Below the pieces are notes generated by a model, which worked only from the letters and a program-made list of their open reading frames with translations, did no database searches and was not told the DNA's origin. A DNA stretch of 64,000 bases from Lepidodermella squamata (lineage: Eukaryota; Animalia; Gastrotricha): NCBI GenBank assembly GCA_047495785.1, contig JBLDXI010000057.1:124001-188000 (forward strand), written 5' to 3'. Shown here in pieces: positions 5,044 through 57,900 of the stretch (position 1 is its first letter; each line of letters starts with the position of its first letter). The position numbers and the translations under genes are program-made.

Positions 5044-6238
5044 TCAATGAATGAGATTTTTAATTTTAGAAAGCAAAAACAAAATGTTGCGTTTAGCTGA
5101 TTTAAGGCGATTTTTCACAATGCTGTCATGGCTTCGATTGTGTAGGCAACAACAGTTGATGGGCAGGTGCAGGATGAGCAACAAAAATGAGATAGCGGCT
5201 ACGTAGCTCGACAGCACTTCGCACCGGCTGCCGTACTTGAATTTGACGGCCGTCAAGCCGCAAGAAATTGTGCAGTTCAAAAAATGAGCGAGCAGGCTGA
5301 TTCCATCCTGGGATAAAATATAATATAATTTGAACAAATATTTTTAAGATATTCACTAAAATTGAGCTTCAAGCACTAAAATAAGTGCTTTTCCCAAATT
5401 TTTTGAATTAATTTTTTTCAATTTTCGATCGATGTAAATAGTGCCCTGGGACTTTTCAATTTAGGTACATGGTAGGGACAGGTATGTAGAAATATTTCAA
5501 TATGAGCTTCCAAGACTGCCGATATCAGAAAAATCACTGATTTGTAAAATCGATAATTGGTATCGATATCGACTCTCTAAGTTTAAATATAACTCTCAAA
5601 TTGCCTGTTGGATTTTGAAATTTTAGTTTGGCCAGGTATTCAAAAAAATTACTTATAATATATTTTTAATTCGTTTTTTCTTGAATTTTCACGCAAAATT
5701 CAAGCACACCCACAAAATTTCGCGATTCAAAGAAGAAAATTGAATTTAATAACAATGTTTCACTTACAAATGCCATGAGTATTCTGCGGGGAGAACGGTT
5801 AAGAACCAGGGAACAAATGACTATGTACGTAGATCCAGAAGTCAACATGAGCAGGGAAATCGGCAAATAAGTGTATCTTGAGCACGACGATAGCATTGTG
5901 ACGACAATGCCGAGATTGACGAGATTGAGAACCAACGACAACACGTGGCGGTACATTTGCCGCTTTCGCCTCGCTCGTTTCCGCTCGAGGGCCGCCAGGT
6001 CGGGTCGAGAGGGCAATGTGATAGAGGTGGGCAGCAACAGATTGCTCGACGATTTAGTCGCAAAAATGGCTGCATGGCGGTGATGATCTCGATCAAGGTC
6101 TGATTTTGAGCCGACATTTTCGCGCAGGTTGGCTCGAATTTCTTCAAGCGTCGACGCCCGGCCTTTGTTGTAATTACCAAGCGCGCCTGCCGGTAACAAG
6201 TCGTCGCCTTCAAAGCGAACCGACTTGGAGTGTTTCAT
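5044..6238 (-). CDS. Multi-pass membrane protein, probably related to the PPxY family but with a different N-terminus (2+ exons)
   Basis: ORF 5666-6238 has two TM segments ending RSPRRILMAF|gtaagt; next exon cag|DGISLLAHFLNCTISC...SYVAAISFLLLILHL. The junction resembles RPERLILS|DIIGIILC of member 2. Confidence 0.55.
5517..5575. repeat. Short dispersed repeat (related copies at ~1397-1447 and, inverted, ~36858-36912)
   Basis: GCCGATATCxGAAAAATCACTGATT...AAAATCGATA at 5517, in reverse complement near 36875-36912, with a similar segment near 1415-1447; all in introns or intergenic DNA. Confidence 0.55.
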
Positions 6239-9433: not shown

Positions 9434-9840
9434 TTGGGATTGTTGGAATAGCTCTCTGTAATTAATGAGGTAATTTTACGAAGTTTTTTCCAATTATTTT
9501 TCGCACTTCTGCTATTGACCCAATATCATTTGACACACTTGATGCACATTGCGCACAAAAAGTAATAATAATGCGAGATTTTGTCAAGTGAAAAATGGGG
9601 ATTAAAATAAATTTCCTGTTTTTCAGGTGCTACTTCGACTCAGAATTCGCGAATCGGAAAAATCAAGATGGAACACAAACAACTGCCGCCCTTAATAACG
9701 ATTTTTCACGATAAATAAATAAATAAACATCAATTCACGAGTTTTATTTTACTTCATTCATGAATATCAAGACAAAAAGCGTAATCGTTTTCTATATAGC
9801 AGCGAAATTAATAGGTTTGAAAAACAGTGAGTTTAAATTT

Positions 9841-9994
9841 AGGCTCCAGGGCGTGTCGCTTGTCTCACCAGGCCACGCCCAGTCATCGAAACTTGACCCA
9901 GATTCGTTTAGGCCCAGTCTGTCATAGAGTTACGCACGGCAGCGCAACCTAGACGTGACCTGGCGAGGTGTCATCAAGCGAGCACGGCTGGCCT
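9841..9994 (-). other. Extended multi-helix RNA structure carrying the SECIS at its tip
   Basis: CTCGCCAGGTCACGTCTAG pairs with CTGGGCGTGGCCTGGTGAG (19 bp incl. G-U); CGTG-c-TCGCTTG with CAAGCGACACG; CCAG/CTGG and AGGC/GCCT outer pairs; side hairpin GTTGCGC-tgccgt-GCGTAAC. Confidence 0.75.
9885..9925 (-). promoter_or_regulatory. Putative SECIS element in the TGR 3' region
   Basis: Minus strand reads A-TGAC / AGACTGGGCCT / AAA-CGAATCT / GGGTCAAGTTT / CGAT: AUGAN...NGAN quartet, 11-bp upper helix with one mismatch, unpaired AAA at the 5' side of the apical loop. Confidence 0.75.
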
Positions 9995-10022
9995 TTAATT
10001 GACCGCTGTTAGAATTCGCCAC

Positions 10023-12574
10023 TCAGCCACAGCACGACTGCAGGCCGAGCGATCGCCCGCTCGCCTTGCTGATCTCGAGAAGCACGAACATCTCAGAATT
10101 TGTCGGGTGAATGGCGACAGTATCGTCGAAATCTTGCTTCGTCGCACCGCGTTTCATCGCAACAGCATACCCTGAAAAAATAAAAAATAAAAATTTTAAA
10201 TATTTAAAAATTAAAAATTAATGAAAAAATTGAAATTTTGAGGAATTAAATTTAAAATTTAGATTTTAGAAATTTGGATTTTTAGGAAAAATACCTTGGA
10301 CGACTTCACCGGCGTTAGGGCCAAGGAAATGAAGGCCCACGACTCGCTCGTCGTCCTTGGAATTGCATACTATTTTCAGGTAGCAATTGATCGTATCCTG
10401 GGTGCCTCGGTGCTGTGAAGCCCGCATCGGAACCGACCATTCATAGGGCACGTAAGTGGCGTGGTAGACCTCGATGTTCTCAGCCCCGAAACGCGCGGTA
10501 GCCTCCTCCTCGGACAGGCCACAAGCGCCGTATTCAAGTGGGGTGAAAACGGTTGTAGCCACCTTGTCGTAGTCCATGTTTTCAGTCGCGTGGAAAAACA
10601 GCCGTCTCGCCAACAACTTGCCGGCTTGAATAGCAACCGGCGTCAACTCTGGCCGGCCATCCAGGACGTCGCCGATTGCGTATATGTTCGCAACATTGGT
10701 CTGCTCATTGACAGCCGGAATTTTCCCAGTTTTTTCGTTGAGTTTAACCCCAGCACCTTGCAGGTTGACGTCGCCGTAGATAGGCTCTCGGCCAATGGCG
10801 AAAATCACCGTTTCGAACTCGTCGGTTGTAGTCGAACCATCGCCGTGTTCGAACGTGACTCGAATACGACGTTCGCCGATTTTTTCCAGCTTTTTCGGGA
10901 CAGCAGGTCGCAGGAATTTTACGCCGGTGTCTAGCAGCACCTTGCCAATTCGCTCGGCCATGTCTTGATCGAAGCCGCGGAGCAGAATGGATCGAACGGC
11001 GATGGTTACGTCGAGGCCGAAACCGCGCAGGAATCCGGCGCATTCCAAGGCGACGTAAGACGCGCCGACGACCAGGGTTCGGCCAGGACTTTCGGGCAGC
11101 GAGAACAGGTCATCACTCGTGATTCCAAACTCACGGTCACCGGGAATATCTGAAATAAAAATGAAAAATGAAAATTAATAAATAGTCGAAAACTATTACG
11201 AATTAGTTTGAAGTCTGAAATTCAAAATGTTTCCTGAATACTTTTTTTCCTAAATACTTTTTGTAATTATTTTCATTAAATAACTTTAGGAACCTATTAT
11301 AGCTAGTTGGGATATTAACTCGGCCTCCCGAAATCCGGAAATCCCGAAAGATCGCTTCTTATTTTATAAAAATGTTATTTTTGTAGATTTGGAATTCCAA
11401 TATTAAAGCTTCATAGTTATTTATAGCACCATTATTTCGATGTCGCAAATTCATTGAGCAAAATTGAACTAGGTACAATTTTATTTCGCTCTAAACCCCG
11501 CTTCTCATTTGTCAGCGAATATATGAGACGTGTGCTAAAATAATTGCACATTATTCCATGCCGTCAAATAAAAAAGGGGAGTTGCAAACGAGAGCGCGAC
11601 TCTTCTCAAATTAAATTGTAATAAACTTTTTAAATTATTTAAATTCTAAATTCTCACCTGGGTACTTTGGACGAAGTCCGGTGGCGACCAAGATCTTGTC
11701 AGCCGTCACCACCCGTTTCTTGCCCTTCTTATCCGTCGCCTCCAGCGTGTGAGCGTCGATAAATCGCGCATACGAGTTAACGTACTCGACGTGGCCTTCA
11801 CGCAGCGAAACGCGGTACTTGAAGTTCGACGACATGATGTGCTCTTGAACCGTGTCGCGCAGCGCCTTCCAGTCGTGGTGCTGGTGGGCCTCGTCCGGGA
11901 TCTTCGTCCAACCGCTCGCCTTCGCATCGAGGATAGACTCACCGAGCAGCGATGCTTGGTGCATCAGCTTCTTCGGAATGCAGCCGACGTTGACGCAAGT
12001 GCCGCCGATGCCCCACGTCGTGCCGATCGGGGTCGGCTTCACGAAGTCGAACATGACGGTTTTGGCGCCGAGAATGGCGGCTTCTTTCGACGCGGCCAGA
12101 CCGCCAGAGCCGCCGCCAATAACAGCGAAATCGTACTCGTACGGGTGACGTTTCGGGCTTGATGCATGAGCCTTCAACGCCTCAGCGACCATTGCTTCGA
12201 GCTTGTTCTCCTGGATAATTTTGTCCAAGGCATCGAAACCGCCTTTACAAATTAAAAATTGTCAATTTAATTATTCTACTAATTTATTACAATTTCAAAA
12301 AATTTGAATTATTGAGCTTACCAATGAAAACTTTGTTAAAGAATATTTGAGGGACCGATCGCTGGCCAGTTTTATCGAAAAGCTCGAATTTTACAGCGAT
12401 GCCACTAGGCAGTTTATCGAGCACAACTTCGTGGTAATTGATGTCTCGCTGCTTGAGTGCTTCCTTAGCTTTGACGCAGAATGGGCAGGTTGTCTTCGAG
12501 AAAACAACAACAGGATGGTTGTTAATTTGATCGTTGATAAAGCTGAGGTAACCAGCTTTTTTCTGACTTGACAT
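10023..12574 (-). CDS. TXNRD/TGR: Thioredoxin glutathione reductase (Grx domain fused to large-type thioredoxin reductase), C-terminus SCCG
   Basis: Four exons: 12574-12322 (Grx, [14 protein letters not shown]), 12242-11658 (GGGSGG FAD motif, GGTCVNVGC), 11149-10295 ([15 protein letters not shown] motif, [28 protein letters not shown]), 10171-10023 (IHPTNSE, QSCCG-TGA). All junctions GT-AG and in phase. Confidence 0.95.
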
Positions 12575-14085: not shown

Positions 14086-15053
14086 CTATTGATAAGCCAT
14101 GACCATTTCGGCCGGTAGCTTTTCGCGAATGTAATCTTCGAACTCTGCTAGTAATTTTGGGTCTGTGAAATGCTCCTTCCAGTCCCCAACTTTGCCCTTA
14201 CGAATAAATTCCGCATCCGCACGCCAGGCTCCGTTCTTCAAAAAACGAAAATCATTATTTTTTATTGATTTTAAGGCGGAATTACCGATGCAAAGTACGA
14301 GTTGGCGTAGTCCTTCTTCTTCCGCATTGCCTCTACCGTGGTCGCCTCGCAAATTTTATCAACCAACTCGTCATCACAGTCGACTTGAATAAATTCAGCT
14401 ATCTTCTTGATTGTTGATTTCGGATTCTTCTTCAAATCTTCATAGCGGACGAATAAAATCGGCTTGCCTTCCTGTTTAGCCTTGAATATTTCGGTCAAAT
14501 GGCGATCGTATGGTCCCCAGAACACCTCGCCACGCATGAATTGCCGGACCATGAACTCAAATGGATGATCGTAAGGCCAGGCGATCATGTTTTGGTAGTG
14601 GTGGTACAGCGAGGTGACAACATCCTTAGGATTACGGTACAGGTACAGGACCTTGGCCTTGAAGGCATTTTTAGGTAGAAGCGGCGAGGAGCAGTGGGTG
14701 TCTAGAACACGCGGTGACGGCATTGTAGCGATACGCTTCAGCTGATCAGCAGGCGCCGGCATTTCAATTAACGGCCGTCGTAGTATTTCAGGGATTTCGT
14801 CGAAATTACGAGTGACTAACAACTGGACTATGTAACACAGCCAGTGATTGCCGCTTTTGGGGAAAGCTGAAATCAGCACGTCGTTGCTTTCAAATGGGAA
14901 GTTGTAGGCTCCTGGCCAGAAGAACGGCGTGATTACAGGCAGGTAATAGCCGCGGAATTGAGCCAATTCCATGCCATCCCGAACTGTGCCCAGCTCGCTA
15001 ATAGCGGCATTGATATCAGGGTTGAAAAGTGTTTTCCATTCGAAATCAGCCAT
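14086..15053 (-). CDS. Cytosolic PAPS-dependent sulfotransferase (Sulfotransfer_1, SULT1-like), 2 exons
   Basis: 5'-PSB FPKSGNHW, catalytic His in DTHC, 3'-PB RNPKDVVTSLYH, RYEDLK, C-terminal RKGKVGDWK. A ~50-nt intron (gtaatt...gaag, ~14286-14236) joins the two ORFs. Confidence 0.93.
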
Positions 15054-15579
15054 GCTCTCACGACCTATTTTCTGTTTATACAAAATCAGAACTAGGGTTT
15101 CGGCTAAATTCAGAGGTGTTTTATCTTGTTTTTATCGGTCTTATCTCAGTCATTGTTATCAGTCCTATTATACAGTCCGGTTCCGGATATTCCCAATTCC
15201 CACTGCATCCCGTGAACAGAGCTGACCAATCAATCATCAAGATCTTGACCTTCGATCATTCAACATTTCATTGTCTTCTTCATCCATCTAGCCATCATGA
15301 AGCTTCATTGATGCGTAAACTAGACTTGTGTTGACCTTACCTGTTAATAAATTTGCATTTGACGTCATGTTAGGTCCATTAAAATGGTGTTATCCCTTTT
15401 AATAGCAGGCTTATGCGCCCTCAGATGCTGACCACGAGGCGAATATCACCCACGTAATTCGCCATGGATAGCGCCAGGCGAATGCTGCTGCATGCAAAAA
15501 AATCCCAAATGCACTTGTTTCTGTTCAGCGACACCAGTCTGAGAGTGTTTAATTTCTGAATTTTATCAACAAAATTGCT

Positions 15580-16544
15580 ATGAGAAACTCGATTTTTGTA
15601 TATTTATGCATTGCTGTAGCTTGCTGCTACGCCGCAAGTCGTCATCGCCATCAGTTGGCGAAAAGGAAGCTGTTGCCCATGGATGATGATGACCAATGTG
15701 GCTTGGCGACCAGCACTGAACACCCGAATCCGTGGCTCGCTTCGATTAAGGTCAAATGGCAAAGCGAAGACGAGGCTGGGAAATGTCGGGGCGTTCTAAT
15801 CCATGAACAATGGGTCTTAACTTCGGCAAAATGCATTTACGGTGCATCCGGCAAGAATAAACCGACATCGTAACTATTGGCCTATTTTATAGTCAAATTT
15901 TCAGAATTCCCATATTGACAGAGTCTTAATCCAACTTGGCCAGCCGAATATATTTCTTGAGCCGAAACAAGGCGATGGAAGCATTCAGGTCGAGGTTGAG
16001 CGTGTTGTATCTCACCCAAAAAGAAGTCACGTCGATATTGCGCTGTTGAAGCTGCCGCTGAAAATCGAATCTGACCGAATAATTCCAGCTTGCCTGCCAG
16101 ACCCTAATCTCTGCCAAATGCCGAGTAGCACGGATGAATCTGCGATCGATTTCTGCTCGAATGCTACTTTGATCAGTTCCGGTGATAAGGGACCTCGATG
16201 TACCAAAATTTGTATATAGTCAAGTTGTTCTTTTAGGGATGCGACCTGTGAAATACGCGATTCTATCGAAAGAAGAATGCGATGAAGAACTCGAGGCGGT
16301 TGGCAGTTTCACTGACGAGTCGCGATTCTGCACCTCCTCCGAAGATTCGACCAAGCTTGAGGAGCGAGGCAGTCCTTTGTTTTGCAGCTACACCCATGAT
16401 CCACAGCGAAGCACTGTCATCGGAATCTTATCGCAGGGCCTTGGCCACGCTAGTGTTCATTCTCGAATTTGTTTCGCCCTGGACTGGATCGGCGATCAGT
16501 TAGGAGAACGAATTCGCAGCTTCCAAGTGGAGCTTGACGACTGA
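15580..16544 (+). CDS. Secreted trypsin-like serine protease homolog, predicted non-catalytic (multi-exon)
   Basis: Signal peptide; PWLASI, CRGVLIHEQWVLTSAKC (canonical TAAHC), HVDIALLKL, IPACLP, EERGSPLFC (canonical GDSGGPL). Confidence 0.85.
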
Positions 16545-30283: not shown

Positions 30284-31431
30284 ACGCTACTGCTTCCGAG
30301 GCGATATAATGGGTTCTAATTATAAAAAATGTCAGTGCAATAATAGCTCTAATAGAATTTGAGTCATTGTCTGAAAGACTAATGCTAAGATAACGCACCT
30401 GTGAAACGTAAAAATCATGTTTCCCCACTGTACAAAACGTGTTGATGACAAGTGAGCAATCTGGTGTGTGTTATAATAGAATGTAGATTATCAGATTACC
30501 TATCCTATAGAGCAAATAAATGTGCCACATGTGTAAAATCGAACGCAAATTCTAGTTCTATTTTCCGAGTAACTTTTTCTGAATATCTGAAAGCGAATGC
30601 AAACTTGCCTGTTGCAGAATCAAAGCTGGAGCGGAACCAAATGTCATTTTCAATTTTTGAATTATTTTTATAGATAATGGCAGTGCCGCGTTCTGGAAGT
30701 TAGGACCAGGCCTTGTAAAGAATATCGCAAAGATTTTGAGCGTTTCAACAGTTTATTTTGTGTTTTCAAATTAATCGTGAAATTCCAGAATATTCAGTAA
30801 ACGAAGAAGCCAATTTTATTTTGATCGAGCATTTCCTTTAGCTTTGATTAAACCAGGGTGCATTCAACTGCGAGAATCAACGGCAACATTTCTAATTGAA
30901 ATTGGCAGACTTCAAGGAAGCATCAGGTGGGTTTTCAGGTTGATGGTTCCAACAATTTTCGTGAATAATTCAACAACACCTGGCACTCAGTAAATATGTT
31001 GGAATCATCGAATTGTTATGCATCGTCCCCGTTATCTCCAATATAACCATGTTACGCCTCTTCAGATAAAATTCGGCACGAATGAGGCTATCGCTGAGAA
31101 CTTGTTTGATAACATGCTTTTATCATGCTATTATTTACAGTAGTTGCGGTAATTTGTTTTGTTAGCGTGCATGAAATGTCAGGTGTGCGGGGTCAAATCG
31201 CCTAATTTTATTTAAACGCCTAAAATCACAACGTGCGTGATAAAAAGTAATCGCCCAACTATTCCCATCATGTATTGCATGATAAATGCAACGAGATGTA
31301 GCAAAAACGACATTCACGCTTCGTTTTATGAATATATTAACACCTATTCGCGAATAAATGGGGCGGCACTGAGTAATACAGACCGGAATGACAGCACGAC
31401 TCATCATCAGCTCATTCCTGCGAATTCTCAG

Positions 31432-32865
31432 ATGGCCTTCTTCGTGCTTCTAGCTTTAATAGTCGTAATTCTCATCTATGGGTGGCGCAGATACCTGCTC
31501 GACCTCAGATTCCGACTTCCACCTGGACCTCTGCCGATTCCCTTCCTGGGCAATTTAAGCATCTCGAAGAACAACCGCAGGAAACCTTGGGCTAATTTTG
31601 CAAAATTCGGCCCTATTTCAACCCATTATCAAGGCCAATCTCGCCTCGTCGTCATTAATGACGTTAAAATAATGCAACAAGCTCTACTCGACCGGTCTCA
31701 GCCTCTGATCAATCGACCCGATTTCGGGCCAATGGCGTGTAAAATGTTCAAACTCGTCAATACCGCAAACGGCGAAATGTGGCGGAAATTGCGCCGATTT
31801 TCAGTTCAAGCCATGCGCGATTTCGGCATGGGCAAACCAGCCATGGTCTCGGCTATTCACCAGGAGCTCGGTTATTTATTTGAAATTATTGATAAAAACA
31901 ACGGCGAGGTGACAGATTTGCTTGTTTACAAAGCCTCGGCAAACATTTTAGCTCCTATGTTCATCGGGAAACGTTACGAATATGACGAGACGAATTTTTC
32001 GAATTTAATTCAAGCCGTTCAAGACTTCAATCTCTGCGAGGACTACTCCTTCTATATTTTTCCAATTTTAAGGCAATTTCGACTCCCGTCAAGCACTGCC
32101 ATGCTGCGGAAGGCTAAATCTATCACTCAAATTTTACTCGAGCAAAATGTGAAAGAAAAACATGGAAAATATGAAAAGCCGGCTCAAAATTTCGTCGATT
32201 TGTACCAGGCTCAAAGTTTCCCGTTCGAGATCAATTTAGATGCCTTCGCAGCTTATGTTGCTGATTTATTCGGAAATGCGATAGACGCCTCGGGGAACAA
32301 CTTGAATTGGTGCCTGCTTCTCCTCGCTAAATTTCCAGCCATTCAGCAGCGTTGCCACGAGGAACTGGACCGCGAAATCGGGCGAGATAGCCAATTATCG
32401 CTAGAAGACCGCGAGCGACATGTCTACCTTGAAGCTGTCATATACGAATCATTCCGCTTCGGAGTTACCGCGCCACTAGCCCTGCCCCATGCGACGCTGG
32501 AATCGGCGGCAGAAATCGGCGGCTATAAAGTTCCACCACAGACATTAGTTCGCTACAACATCTGGGCCGTGCATAACGACCCGGCTTATTGGGGCGATCC
32601 GGAATCGTTCAGGCCTGAGCGATTTATAAGCGATGAAGACGGCCGATTGTTGAAGCATTACACTCACTTCATTCCGTTCGGAATCGGGGCTAGGAGTTGC
32701 CTTGGAGAACCGCTGGCTCGGCAACTCCAGTTTCTGTTTGTCGCATCTTTGCTACAACAATACGAATTCAGGCTTGATGGCGATGTTGACCTAGATAGCG
32801 GCGCTCAAATATCATTTCATGCCCCGCCGCCTTTCAAACTGCTGGCAACAAAAAGGTTGTGGTAA
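31432..32865 (+). CDS. Cytochrome P450, CYP2 clan, intronless CDS, atypical I-helix
   Basis: N-terminal anchor, LPPGPLPIPFLGN, WRKLRRF, ExxR (ESFR), FRPERF, heme motif FGIGARSCLG; ATG 31432 directly after a ctcag acceptor-like sequence. Confidence 0.95.
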   Translation: MAFFVLLALIVVILIYGWRRYLLDLRFRLPPGPLPIPFLGNLSISKNNRRKPWANFAKFGPISTHYQGQSRLVVINDVKIMQQALLDRSQPLINRPDFGPMACKMFKLVNTANGEMWRKLRRFSVQAMRDFGMGKPAMVSAIHQELGYLFEIIDKNNGEVTDLLVYKASANILAPMFIGKRYEYDETNFSNLIQAVQDFNLCEDYSFYIFPILRQFRLPSSTAMLRKAKSITQILLEQNVKEKHGKYEKPAQNFVDLYQAQSFPFEINLDAFAAYVADLFGNAIDASGNNLNWCLLLLAKFPAIQQRCHEELDREIGRDSQLSLEDRERHVYLEAVIYESFRFGVTAPLALPHATLESAAEIGGYKVPPQTLVRYNIWAVHNDPAYWGDPESFRPERFISDEDGRLLKHYTHFIPFGIGARSCLGEPLARQLQFLFVASLLQQYEFRLDGDVDLDSGAQISFHAPPPFKLLATKRLW

Positions 32866-54955: not shown

Positions 54956-57900
54956 TTACATGCGGGTCATGTATATTGGTGGGATACTGCCGCGTTTGTG
55001 TCCAGTCAATAAATCCCCAAAGCCCTCCGTATGAGAGTATCCAAAACCCGTTCCCGAGTCTCGGAATGAATCGCCGCTCAGACGAGGTCGAGTTCGCCGG
55101 CGCATGGATGTCGTCGATCGCACACTTCCCGAAATCGGTAGAGATACAGTATCTCGAATTGGCGCAGGGTGCATTTCTACGCTCTGCTGAGTCGTCAATT
55201 TTGGTGCCGCTTCCTGCTGTTCCGCTTCCTTTCGCTTCTTGCCACCTCCCAGCAGCAGCCGGAATACTTTGACTATGAAAATATCTCTTTCGCCATTTTC
55301 TTTCTCTCTGACTGCGTCTGTCAGCGTTGGCATAATGCAGCGAACAGCGTAGGACAATGCGATGCCAGGTAGAATCGCCATCGTAATCGCGCTCAAGGAA
55401 GCAAGCCACGTTGGGCCAAAATTCAGAGCAGCATATTGGGCGCCTTCGTAATCGTACTGAGCTCCGAATAGCCAGTAAACAACTGGGCCGAAAGCAAAAA
55501 CGCTGATCCAATAGATCAGAAGGGAACCCCATAATGTGATATGGCTCCAAATTGTCCAGTAGGCTGTTTCCTGGGCACAGCGAATCGTAACCAATGACAG
55601 TGTGGTGAATCCTAAGGTGAATGAAAAAGTTCGAAGATCAGCCAACTCAACTGAAGCTGCGGCCCAACGGGATCCACTTGACGGAATATTGTACGCCGAT
55701 GTCCCATAATGAACAAAGAAAACACAGGCAGCTGAGTACAGACTGTCGATGAAAGTCAATGTTAACGAGCGAATGTTGAGCATCGAATTAGACAGGCCGA
55801 CTTCATACAGCAGGGGGAAAGAGAGCAAACCAGTCGAGCTGACATCCTGGTCGCTAGCACCGAGAATAATGCATGGCAAAGCCGTGTAGATTGTATTGAA
55901 TAGACCAACAAATAGAGGGTCAAATGCAGTCTAGAAGTCACATGAGCGGTTATAAAACGTAAAGATATAATAATACTATTTACTTGAGCAGTACCGCCGC
56001 AAAAAAACGCGAAGAAGAAATGCCCCAGTGTGAATGTAAGGTTCTTGTAGAGAAAATAAAGCACAAATGTCGCCATTCGAGCATAGCTCCAGCGGCCGTG
56101 GACAAGGAGTAATTTGGCAAGAAACCGAAACTGGGCGATAGCATAGTCACTAGATAGTACAGCTTGAAGCCCTTCTCGTCCAGCTATTCCAACACCGATA
56201 TTCGCAGCTGTTCGAAGGGAAAATTCATGTAAGTAGGCACTGAGGCAATAAATTTACCTCGAATCATGGGCACATCGTTTGCTCCGTCTCCAATAGCGCA
56301 AGTTCTCGCATGCAGCTGGCGACGAAATAGCTCAACCACTCTCGCCTTAGATAACGGGGTCATCCGGCAGCAAATTACGGTAGAACACCGCCCGGCAACC
56401 TTAACGAATAGATCAGTCAGATTACTTCCACCGACCTCGTTGCCCTCTTCATCGTCTTCTGTGTCTGAAAATACGTCGCTTCCAGTTGCATTCGTTGGAA
56501 TAGTCCCCGAGCTGGTTGGGCTTTCTGTGGCTTTCTTCTTATTCAAGTGAGGCAAGATGGAATCCTAAATAAAGTAGAAAATGTGCAAAAGCTTCAATTA
56601 ATAATGCAAATTTTACCAATGCCCCGCCGGTTATTGATAGCCCGAAAACTGGACCCTCGCCATTTTGAGCCTCGCTTTCGCGTGGTTTCTTATCAGTCGA
56701 GAAGAAGCCGTCGAATGTTTCCGCCATGTTCGTGCGAAAACGCTGTAAAGCACTCATGTCACGTCTTGCTACACTGGGGCGAGGTGGAGCTTTGTACGGC
56801 TTGCCTTCCATTTCCTGGTACAACCGTGCCAACATACCTGGAACGCGGTGTTTCGCAGCGTCATCGTCGTTTATCACGGTTAAATTTGTGTCTGCAGCCA
56901 GCAAATTGCAAGAATACCCAATATTGATAGCCGTCTCTTGCTTGTCTCCAGTTAGAACCCACATCCTAATACCAGCATTAAGAAGCTGCTTAATAGCCAG
57001 CGGAACCCCGTCTTGCAGCTTATCCTCGATGGCCGTCGCGCCGATTAGAGTAAAATCACGCTCTATTTCGTTGTAGACCTCTCGAACCTTTTCGTCTCGT
57101 TCACCAATCGCAGACTCGGCTTCTTCGCATCTAGCCTTCCACTGAGCAAACTCATGCTCCTTCAAGATGCGCATTCCAAATACCAAAGTACGAAGTCCCT
57201 TCTCTGCGAAGTCTCTCAAGTGACCGGTGGTTCTTTCGATCATTTCCTCTTGGTTCGGGGCTGCGAACGGAAACAAAGACGAATCGGCACCTTTGCAATA
57301 CAAAATTATGACCGATTCGTCATCAGGGTCACGAATGATCACGGACATCCGTTTTCGCACGTTATCAAAATCGAGAAGATGCAACAGCTGAAACTTGATG
57401 ATGCGAGACGATCTGTTGGTATTTGGAACAGGCTCTGCTATTGTTAAAGATTCAGCATCACGTTCCTGAAGTACGTAGCCGAATGACCTTGCCCCTGATA
57501 TTAAAGCGTTCTCGTCAGGCGACTGAGCTTGGTATATGAATGTTGTAGAGCCATCTGTTGAGTCTGGCCTCGGTACACGACTTGGTACAACCGTGCTGCA
57601 TAGTGCCATAAGTCTAAAATAGTGCTGCAGCATTCTCCCGTGAGTTGAAAGCGAGCCTAAATTAATTAGCCGATTAACTACATGTTTCTATATCGAAGTT
57701 TGAAAATATGTTACCTTGTTGCAAAATTGCTTCGACCAAACGACTGTCGTAAAATACAAAAGATGGATCTGCGTCGGGGGTGAGGGTCGAAATCAAGTCG
57801 AGACGCGGGAAAGTTGCGCCCTCTTCATATGGGTCGACATCAGTACCAGTGGCCTCGTCCAAAACATCACCGTATTTCACGCCGTAAATCGAACATTTAT

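Follow-up and report, generated by a model that had tools for sequence, protein, structure and literature searches.

The canonical type 1 SECIS (Rfam SECIS_1, RF00031) is a 3′UTR structure with an AUGA/GA kink-turn core, a helix 2 of 12 positions, an apical unpaired AA 13 nt past the core, and a helix 1 that closes the internal loop; a U stands three nucleotides before the AUGA. The consensus model is unbranched. Helix 1 has been described as "variable in size and composition" (PMC2761289), and SECISearch, in the form used in one earlier study, removed Y-shaped candidates (PMC1802603). A literature search of incomplete coverage returned no published description of a SECIS branch.

Within the thioredoxin reductase (TrxR) family, the SECIS elements of TR1, TGR, and Euplotes TR serve a Sec codon at the penultimate position, lie close to the stop, and restrict the insertion of Sec to its natural site at the C terminus (Turanov et al. 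2013, PMC3737529). SECIS elements of the mitochondrial TXNRD2 type are reported to be non-restricting. The feature of the SECIS behind this C-terminal restriction was left unidentified in that study, in which removal of the stable structure after the UGA of Euplotes TR1 left UGA coding unchanged (PMC3737529). SECIS elements may also outlast the Sec codon. Fossil elements after a Sec-to-Cys change have been described in canarypox GPx4 (PMC1802603) and in SelK of Drosophila willistoni and Drosophila persimilis (PMC2500217), and the Drosophila SelK fossils show lost conservation.

The locus described here lies within a 64,000-nucleotide stretch of Lepidodermella squamata DNA (the window). Its gene belongs to the same family as TR1, TGR, and Euplotes TR, and its SECIS, like theirs, is close to the stop, the core lying ∼100 nt after it in a TrxR/TGR 3′UTR; unlike theirs, the gene no longer has a Sec codon. 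As in the canarypox GPx4 and Drosophila SelK fossils, Cys stands at the Sec position of the homologs and the SECIS is recognizable in place, but in contrast to the Drosophila fossils the window element is without visible decay.

The host gene and its C terminus

The host gene is a TGR, a glutaredoxin-thioredoxin reductase fusion: A Grx ORF (with CPFC) is followed by TrxR pyridine-nucleotide disulfide reductase exons, and the best protein matches are TrxR/TGR. The sense strand is the minus strand, on which all element coordinates are given (Table 1). The nearest relative is a metagenomic animal contig (L001-L003) with a protein identity of 64-67%; a 284-aa exon word search, a representative search, a metagenome scan, and a relative-seeded search yielded no close orthologue and nothing exceeding 64% identity. 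The relative (L003) shares the last intron with the window in position and phase, and its protein ends ...KSACUG, encoded by TGC TGA GGT TAA.

We compared the C terminus with a panel of homologous TrxR/TGR cDNAs from metatranscriptomes. Three entries without a Sec ending (L043-L045, one of which derives from a skin metagenome) were left out, and the counts of endings cover the 74 cDNAs in which the end was found. The Sec TGA of the panel lies 45-50 codons after the equivalent of the exon junction (47 codons in 66 out of 74) and is followed by one codon, mostly GGN, and the stop. In the window, codons 48, 49, and 50 after the junction are TGT, GGC, and TGA. The codon aligned with the window TGT is a Sec TGA in all 74 panel cDNAs and in L003. 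Since the window TGA aligns with the ordinary stop of the homologs and the TGT with their Sec TGA, the gene is a Sec-to-Cys TGR that retains an intact SECIS, rather than a gene with a recoded UGA, and a single base change, TGA to TGT, has turned the Sec codon into Cys. The first-pass annotation of this DNA had assumed readthrough of the TGA; by descent this TGA is neither a Sec codon nor a readthrough codon but an ordinary stop, and the true Sec site, two codons upstream, is now TGT. No alternative or second last exon was found in the window. The last intron (10172-10294) is extremely AT-rich simple sequence (GC 0.11).

TrxRs of the Cys type end in SCCS in Drosophila and in GCCG in Caenorhabditis elegans TRXR-2, and to our knowledge the genes for these two proteins carry no SECIS. 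The window protein resembles them in having a C-terminal Cys-Cys dyad in place of Cys-Sec, with Ser on the N-terminal flank, and differs from them in that a Grx domain is fused to the reductase and the SECIS of its gene is complete. Gromer and colleagues, in 2003, reportedly tied the Ser flank to Cys-type TrxRs such as Drosophila SCCS. S-C-U-G is likewise present in our panel.

Table 1. Features of the TGR 3′ end and its SECIS domain, with neighboring genes (window positions)
Feature	Position	Strand	Basis or detail
Last coding exon of the TGR gene	10026..10171	-	Translation; ends ...LGLQSCCG; intron position and phase as in L003
TGT (Cys) at the Sec TGA position of homologs	10029..10031	-	Codon 48 after the exon junction
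TGA, ordinary stop	10023..10025	-	Aligned with the TAA/TGA stop of Sec-encoding relatives
In-frame open stretch	9930..10022	-	30 codons, closed by TAA 9932-9930; no coding signature
Outermost AU-rich helix, 5′ strand	9992..10008	-	Pairs with 9800-9815; absent from the first-pass annotation
Extended helix 1, 5′ strands of the 4-bp and 11-bp helices	9975..9991	-	Partners 9846-9849 and 9852-9862; the 11-bp helix, with one bulge, pairs 9986-9975 with 9852-9862
Asymmetric internal loop AUGACAC	9968..9974	-	Opposite A9863
19-bp helix, 5′ strand	9949..9967	-	Partner 9864-9882; 4 G-U, 0 mismatch
5′-side hairpin of the three-way junction	9929..9948	-	7 bp, 9948-9942 with 9935-9929; loop UGCCGU
SECIS proper	9886..9928	-	UCU linker, AUGA 9925-9922, helix 2, apical loop, GA 9887-9886
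Helix 1, 3′ strands	9800..9885	-	9882-9864, 9862-9852, 9849-9846, 9815-9800; small hairpin 9834-9822
AATAAA, likely polyadenylation signal	9743..9748	-	Sequence; mRNA end near 9725
Neighboring genes	14271-15083, 31237-32865, 56539-57633, 15580-16544	-, +, -, +	Cytosolic sulfotransferase ORF, cytochrome P450, P-type ATPase exon, trypsin-like ORFs

Fold of the 3′UTR domain

RNA folding of the minus strand of 9841-9994 gives -75.2 kcal/mol, compared with -54.0 ± 4.3 kcal/mol for 200 dinucleotide shuffles (z = -4.9; none of the 200 as good), whereas the plus strand of the same interval reaches only -58 kcal/mol (z = -2.0). The same helices form when 226, 361, or 501 nt are folded. Pair probabilities are 0.95-1.0 in the main helices and 0.65-0.97 in the outermost AU-rich helix. 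Across the whole fold we count 62 Watson-Crick pairs and nine G-U pairs, with no A-C juxtapositions; this census, together with the strand asymmetry, indicates pairing at the RNA level, not a palindrome of the DNA. We found no further copy of the element in the window, and a repeat search reported no long inverted repeat.

The first-pass annotation had proposed a three-way-junction RNA on the minus strand, selected for pairing as RNA, and both its fold and its strand are borne out by these energies and pair counts. Its individual parts were also found in place: the 19-bp helix with G-U pairs, the 11-bp helix with a bulge, the short outer helices, and the 7-bp side hairpin, whose 3′ arm contains the TAA (9932-9930) that closes the open stretch. 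So was the GC-rich island in an AT-rich 3′ region, with a GC content of 0.60 within the element against 0.27 downstream; the start of the element, put at ∼30 nt past the TGA, measures 29 nt for the interval as annotated. The domain is, however, larger than 9841-9994: It spans 10008-9800 and takes up ∼70% of a 3′UTR of ∼300 nt.

The SECIS core

At the center of the fold is a well-formed SECIS core in canonical register, as had been claimed for the region above the junction. The AUGA faces the GA across the kink-turn quartet and the two flank helix 2, in which 9920-9909 pair with 9900-9889 over twelve positions with one mismatch. The apical loop of 8 nt at the top of helix 2 opens with the unpaired AA (9908-9907), 13 nt after the AUGA. 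Helix 1 closes the internal loop, the 19-bp helix starting 3 nt after the 3′ GA. In all these respects, as in its 3′UTR location and in the U three nucleotides before the AUGA, the element is like the canonical type 1 SECIS.

It differs from the canonical form below the core. On the 5′ side the AUGA is parted from helix 1 by the 7-bp hairpin and the UCU linker, so that the internal-loop strand bears a branch and the whole is Y-shaped, in contrast to the unbranched consensus model; and helix 1 reaches about 45-58 pairs. The host frame, too, is unlike that of a canonical SECIS in having no Sec codon: We found no in-frame Sec UGA in the frame upstream, the Sec position being TGT and the only in-frame UGA being the stop.

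The element was also picked up by the pattern-plus-folding finder written for this analysis. The Rfam SECIS_1 model scores it at 18.5 bits, under the gathering score of 35, but this low score carries little information because the same model reported only three out of 20 panel cDNAs that have a Sec codon (17 went unreported, and only one reached at least 35 bits).

The register of the 19-bp helix rules out a second kink-turn at the AUGACAC loop (9974-9968). An 8-mer from the region of this loop, GAUGACAC, is also present upstream of the SECIS in L003, at about 5730-5740; its sharing between the window and L003 is probably chance.

A branched base in TrxR/TGR SECIS elements

SECIS cores in the 3′UTRs of the panel were located with the pattern-plus-folding finder, which did not find every locus and gave a few wrong calls (its output for L063 and L067 was discarded, and L031 comes from its first version). 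Each locus was folded with 80 or 100 nt of flank per side, the SECIS being held fixed, and was compared with shuffled flanks. A junction counted as tight when a single stem-loop lay within 3 nt of helix 1 and ended 1-7 nt short of the NUGA, and the 3′ side was bare.

With 100 nt of flank per side, the minimum-energy predictions contain a tight 5′-side single-hairpin junction in 17 out of 38 TrxR/TGR 3′UTR clusters, which are independent in sequence and related phylogenetically, against 1.4 expected from shuffled flanks (P about 6e-15, binomial). The mirror form, with the hairpin on the 3′ side, occurs in none of the 38 (1.1 expected). More generally, tight branches are absent from the 3′ strand where it joins the SECIS GA to helix 1, and any hairpin at all occurs there in just three of the 38 clusters, whereas the 5′ strand is often branched. 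Given the size of the effect and its handedness, the recurrence of the predicted junction is unlikely to be due to chance. On these models a long helix 1 with a 5′-side hairpin is the usual base of a TrxR/TGR SECIS in many eukaryotes. The first-pass annotation had regarded helix I as "normally short" and the structure under it as an extra device; that view does not survive the comparison, since the same arrangement is found at a frequency so far above expectation in the family.

The window has a tight junction of this kind, as do 1% of its flank shuffles. The junction was also found in the relative L003, in a transcript very like the Mactra gene and likely molluscan (L085), in Lingula, in Mactra, and in a millipede, and folding places a hairpin at the corresponding position in quail TR1. 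Helix 1 has 28-46 enclosing pairs in the invertebrate members, compared with 58 in the window. The flanks of the window fold with a z of -5.6 to -5.8; the panel median is near -2.2 and several loci reach -5 to -7, so that the window value is high and not unique. That the branches of TrxR/TGR SECIS elements lie on the 5′ side is itself unexpected from the textbook SECIS.

A whole-domain MAFFT alignment across animals misregistered helix 1 as well as the arms of the hairpin; the models therefore cover the hairpin and SECIS only. A covariance model built from Mactra and L085, with the window unused (R1), matches the window over its full length at 9883-9947 on the minus strand (19.1 bits, E = 0.02), its sole match in the window below an E of 1; it also finds Lingula and canary TGR. 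When these two were added (R2, the window again unused), the window scored 14.5 bits with an E of 0.43, a Sec-encoding gene of the millipede scored 15.3 bits and quail TR1 32.6 bits, and six further Sec-encoding mRNAs were found. Both window matches, that of R1 and that of R2, lie where the element was expected and are weak. The bird genes, canary TGR and quail TR1, both match the hairpin-plus-SECIS model. In the side hairpin, four out of five pairs are changed on both sides, and 92% of the cells are paired compared with 28-44% for slid partners, in an alignment that was fitted to the structure and favors pairing. The assignment of the window to this class is supported mainly by its predicted anatomy and position, and weakly by score.

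In the predicted folds, the TrxR/TGR SECIS elements of very different eukaryotes share a branched base, unlike the textbook SECIS, which has no branch; Y-shaped candidates are thrown out by at least one standard pipeline. It is conceivable, if unlikely, that the conserved 5′-side hairpin, with its three-way junction, is what limits Sec insertion to the C terminus in TR1/TGR-type mRNAs. If the branch does restrict insertion to the C-terminal codon, a restriction that has been demonstrated and left unexplained (PMC3737529) becomes directly testable.

Origin and present state of the element

The structure is probably an inherited TGR-type SECIS domain in the branched form typical of the family, now orphaned or nearly so. 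As modeled, a long helix 1 leads to a three-way junction whose 5′ branch is the small hairpin, followed 3 nt on by the kink-turn core, helix 2, and the AA loop. In Sec-encoding relatives such a domain would recruit the Sec-insertion machinery to the penultimate UGA. Here that UGA has mutated to TGT, giving a Cys-type enzyme ending ...SCCG-stop, and the domain would have been inherited, not invented for readthrough. The one possible substrate left to the SECIS would be the stop UGA ∼97 nt upstream. What counts against a relic is the state of the element: Decay would be expected, but no core motif has been lost and no helix is broken. A SECIS that is orphaned and still perfectly folded may have been orphaned recently or may be retained for a minor role; the intactness fits continued selection and a very recent switch alike, and "retained" describes the element better than a visible "fossil." The locus is a clean natural example of a TGR in which Cys has replaced Sec while the entire SECIS domain persists; it can help to date and explain the loss of Sec, and it offers a setting in which to study how an orphan SECIS behaves beside a UGA stop.

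A different possibility is that the SECIS is at work now and directs Sec to the UGA of the stop (10025-10023), two codons past the old Sec site. The product, a minor isoform, would carry 29 residues after ...SCCG-U and stop at the TAA of the side hairpin, and recoding could limit itself if ribosomes in the extension melted helix 1 and the hairpin, an idea that goes back to the first-pass annotation. Like this feedback, the stalling of ribosomes and the tethering of the SECIS that were put forward there are speculative. The geometry is favorable, in that the intact SECIS lies ∼97 nt downstream from the UGA, above the 51-nt minimum, and elements of the TR1/TGR type tolerate Sec insertion at the natural C-terminal site and in its vicinity (PMC3737529); moreover, the outermost helix begins 14 nt after the UGA. 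However, the TGA occupies the ancestral stop position, and in ciliate-type homologs, which end UGA-GGY-UGA, a UGA at the same offset occupies the stop position in spite of a SECIS. The open stretch that had been annotated as a readthrough frame is no longer than chance, stretches of at least 30 codons occurring in 31% of dinucleotide shuffles; it has no counterpart in L003, and it is Arg-rich, as GC-rich noncoding RNA would give. The C-terminal redox arm of TrxR is mobile, and a tail of 30 residues would presumably sit on it. Stable structure 3′ of a UGA is likewise found in the SelenoN Sec redefinition element and in viral readthrough stem-loops and pseudoknots. Those elements start ∼6-8 nt from the UGA and act without a kink-turn core, whereas in the window a spacer of ∼31 nt separates the UGA from the GC-rich helices, a weak AU-rich helix being all that lies nearer, at 14 nt, and the structure is the SECIS itself. 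On balance we consider such active recoding unlikely.

The unusual perfection of the fold could instead reflect selection for a Sec-independent job, such as mRNA stability, localization, or the binding of SBP2 or another protein that tunes TGR translation. The 58 enclosing pairs, the flank z of about -5.6, and the mismatch-free 19-bp helix all agree with such a role, as does the share of the 3′UTR that the domain occupies, which is most of it. However, a recent TGA-to-TGT change would give equal perfection, and the domains of Sec-encoding relatives are comparably structured (z of -5 to -7 in L047, L072, and L079), so that we hold this repurposing to be quite improbable. It would take a single base, given the intact SECIS, for the gene to be a selenoprotein gene still, in some or all individuals, with the TGT at 10031-10029 standing for TGA either as a polymorphism between strains or through a mistake in the assembly or consensus. 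One sequencing run (X2) has 18 out of 19 sampled words of 9780-10040, one word differing somewhere in the interval. Even so, runs X1 and X2, from two studies with two organism labels, are near-identical to the window over this interval (shares of 1.00 and 0.95; X1 may be the source sample of the window), and the preceding Ser (SCCG) recalls the flank of Cys-type enzymes, although S-C-U-G occurs in the panel too; we regard this as very unlikely. Finally, two arms that pair across ∼200 nt could belong to a DNA inverted repeat or MITE-like insertion that fell by chance into the 3′UTR. The unequal folding of the two strands, the presence of G-U and absence of A-C oppositions, and the failure to find a long inverted repeat or, within the 64-kb window, a further copy all speak against this, and the center of the structure is a canonical SECIS homologous to that of the relatives. 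A transposon origin is close to excluded.

Sequence around the stop in related genes

In animal TGR/TrxR mRNAs (L084-L088, L091, and L094), we note a near-invariant UGA GGU UAA followed by [A/G/U]CC CUG CU(G/C). Genes of bivalves and brachiopods have this post-Sec stretch, as do several animal transcripts of unidentified origin, and canary TGR has a shorter version, UAA GCC UGC UG. The stretch may be a sequence context conserved for recoding or termination. In the window it has been lost (10022-10005; TGA GTG GCG AAT), and L003 keeps only UAAGCCC.

The TrxR cDNAs of organisms that use TAA and TAG as sense codons (L006, L010, L012, L018, L021, L030, L033, L038, L071, and L082) end UGA-GGY-UGA. 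These ten cDNAs have a conserved long-range stem ∼7 nt past the stop, in which GGCA(A/G)CUGA pairs with UCAGUUGCC 60-150 nt downstream. L003 has a separate hairpin of ∼100 nt (5654-5755) that runs from its TAA stop, ahead of the SECIS domain, and a similar strong hairpin directly follows the stop in L072.

Expression and neighboring genes

Run X2, which carries another organism label, comes from another study, and is guessed to be RNA, contains 0.95 of the words sampled from 9780-10040, and for 9500-11200 the share is 0.72. As judged from word shares rather than reads, the deficit is about what would be expected from a spliced mRNA ending near 9725.

The neighboring genes include a cytosolic sulfotransferase ORF, a P-type ATPase exon, and, by eye, ORFs that look like trypsin-like proteases. 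None of the window proteins gave a close match with a name, which suggests an animal lineage that has been poorly sampled. A further neighbor is an apparently intronless, CYP2-like cytochrome P450, which in a protein search is at most 33% identical to anything named.
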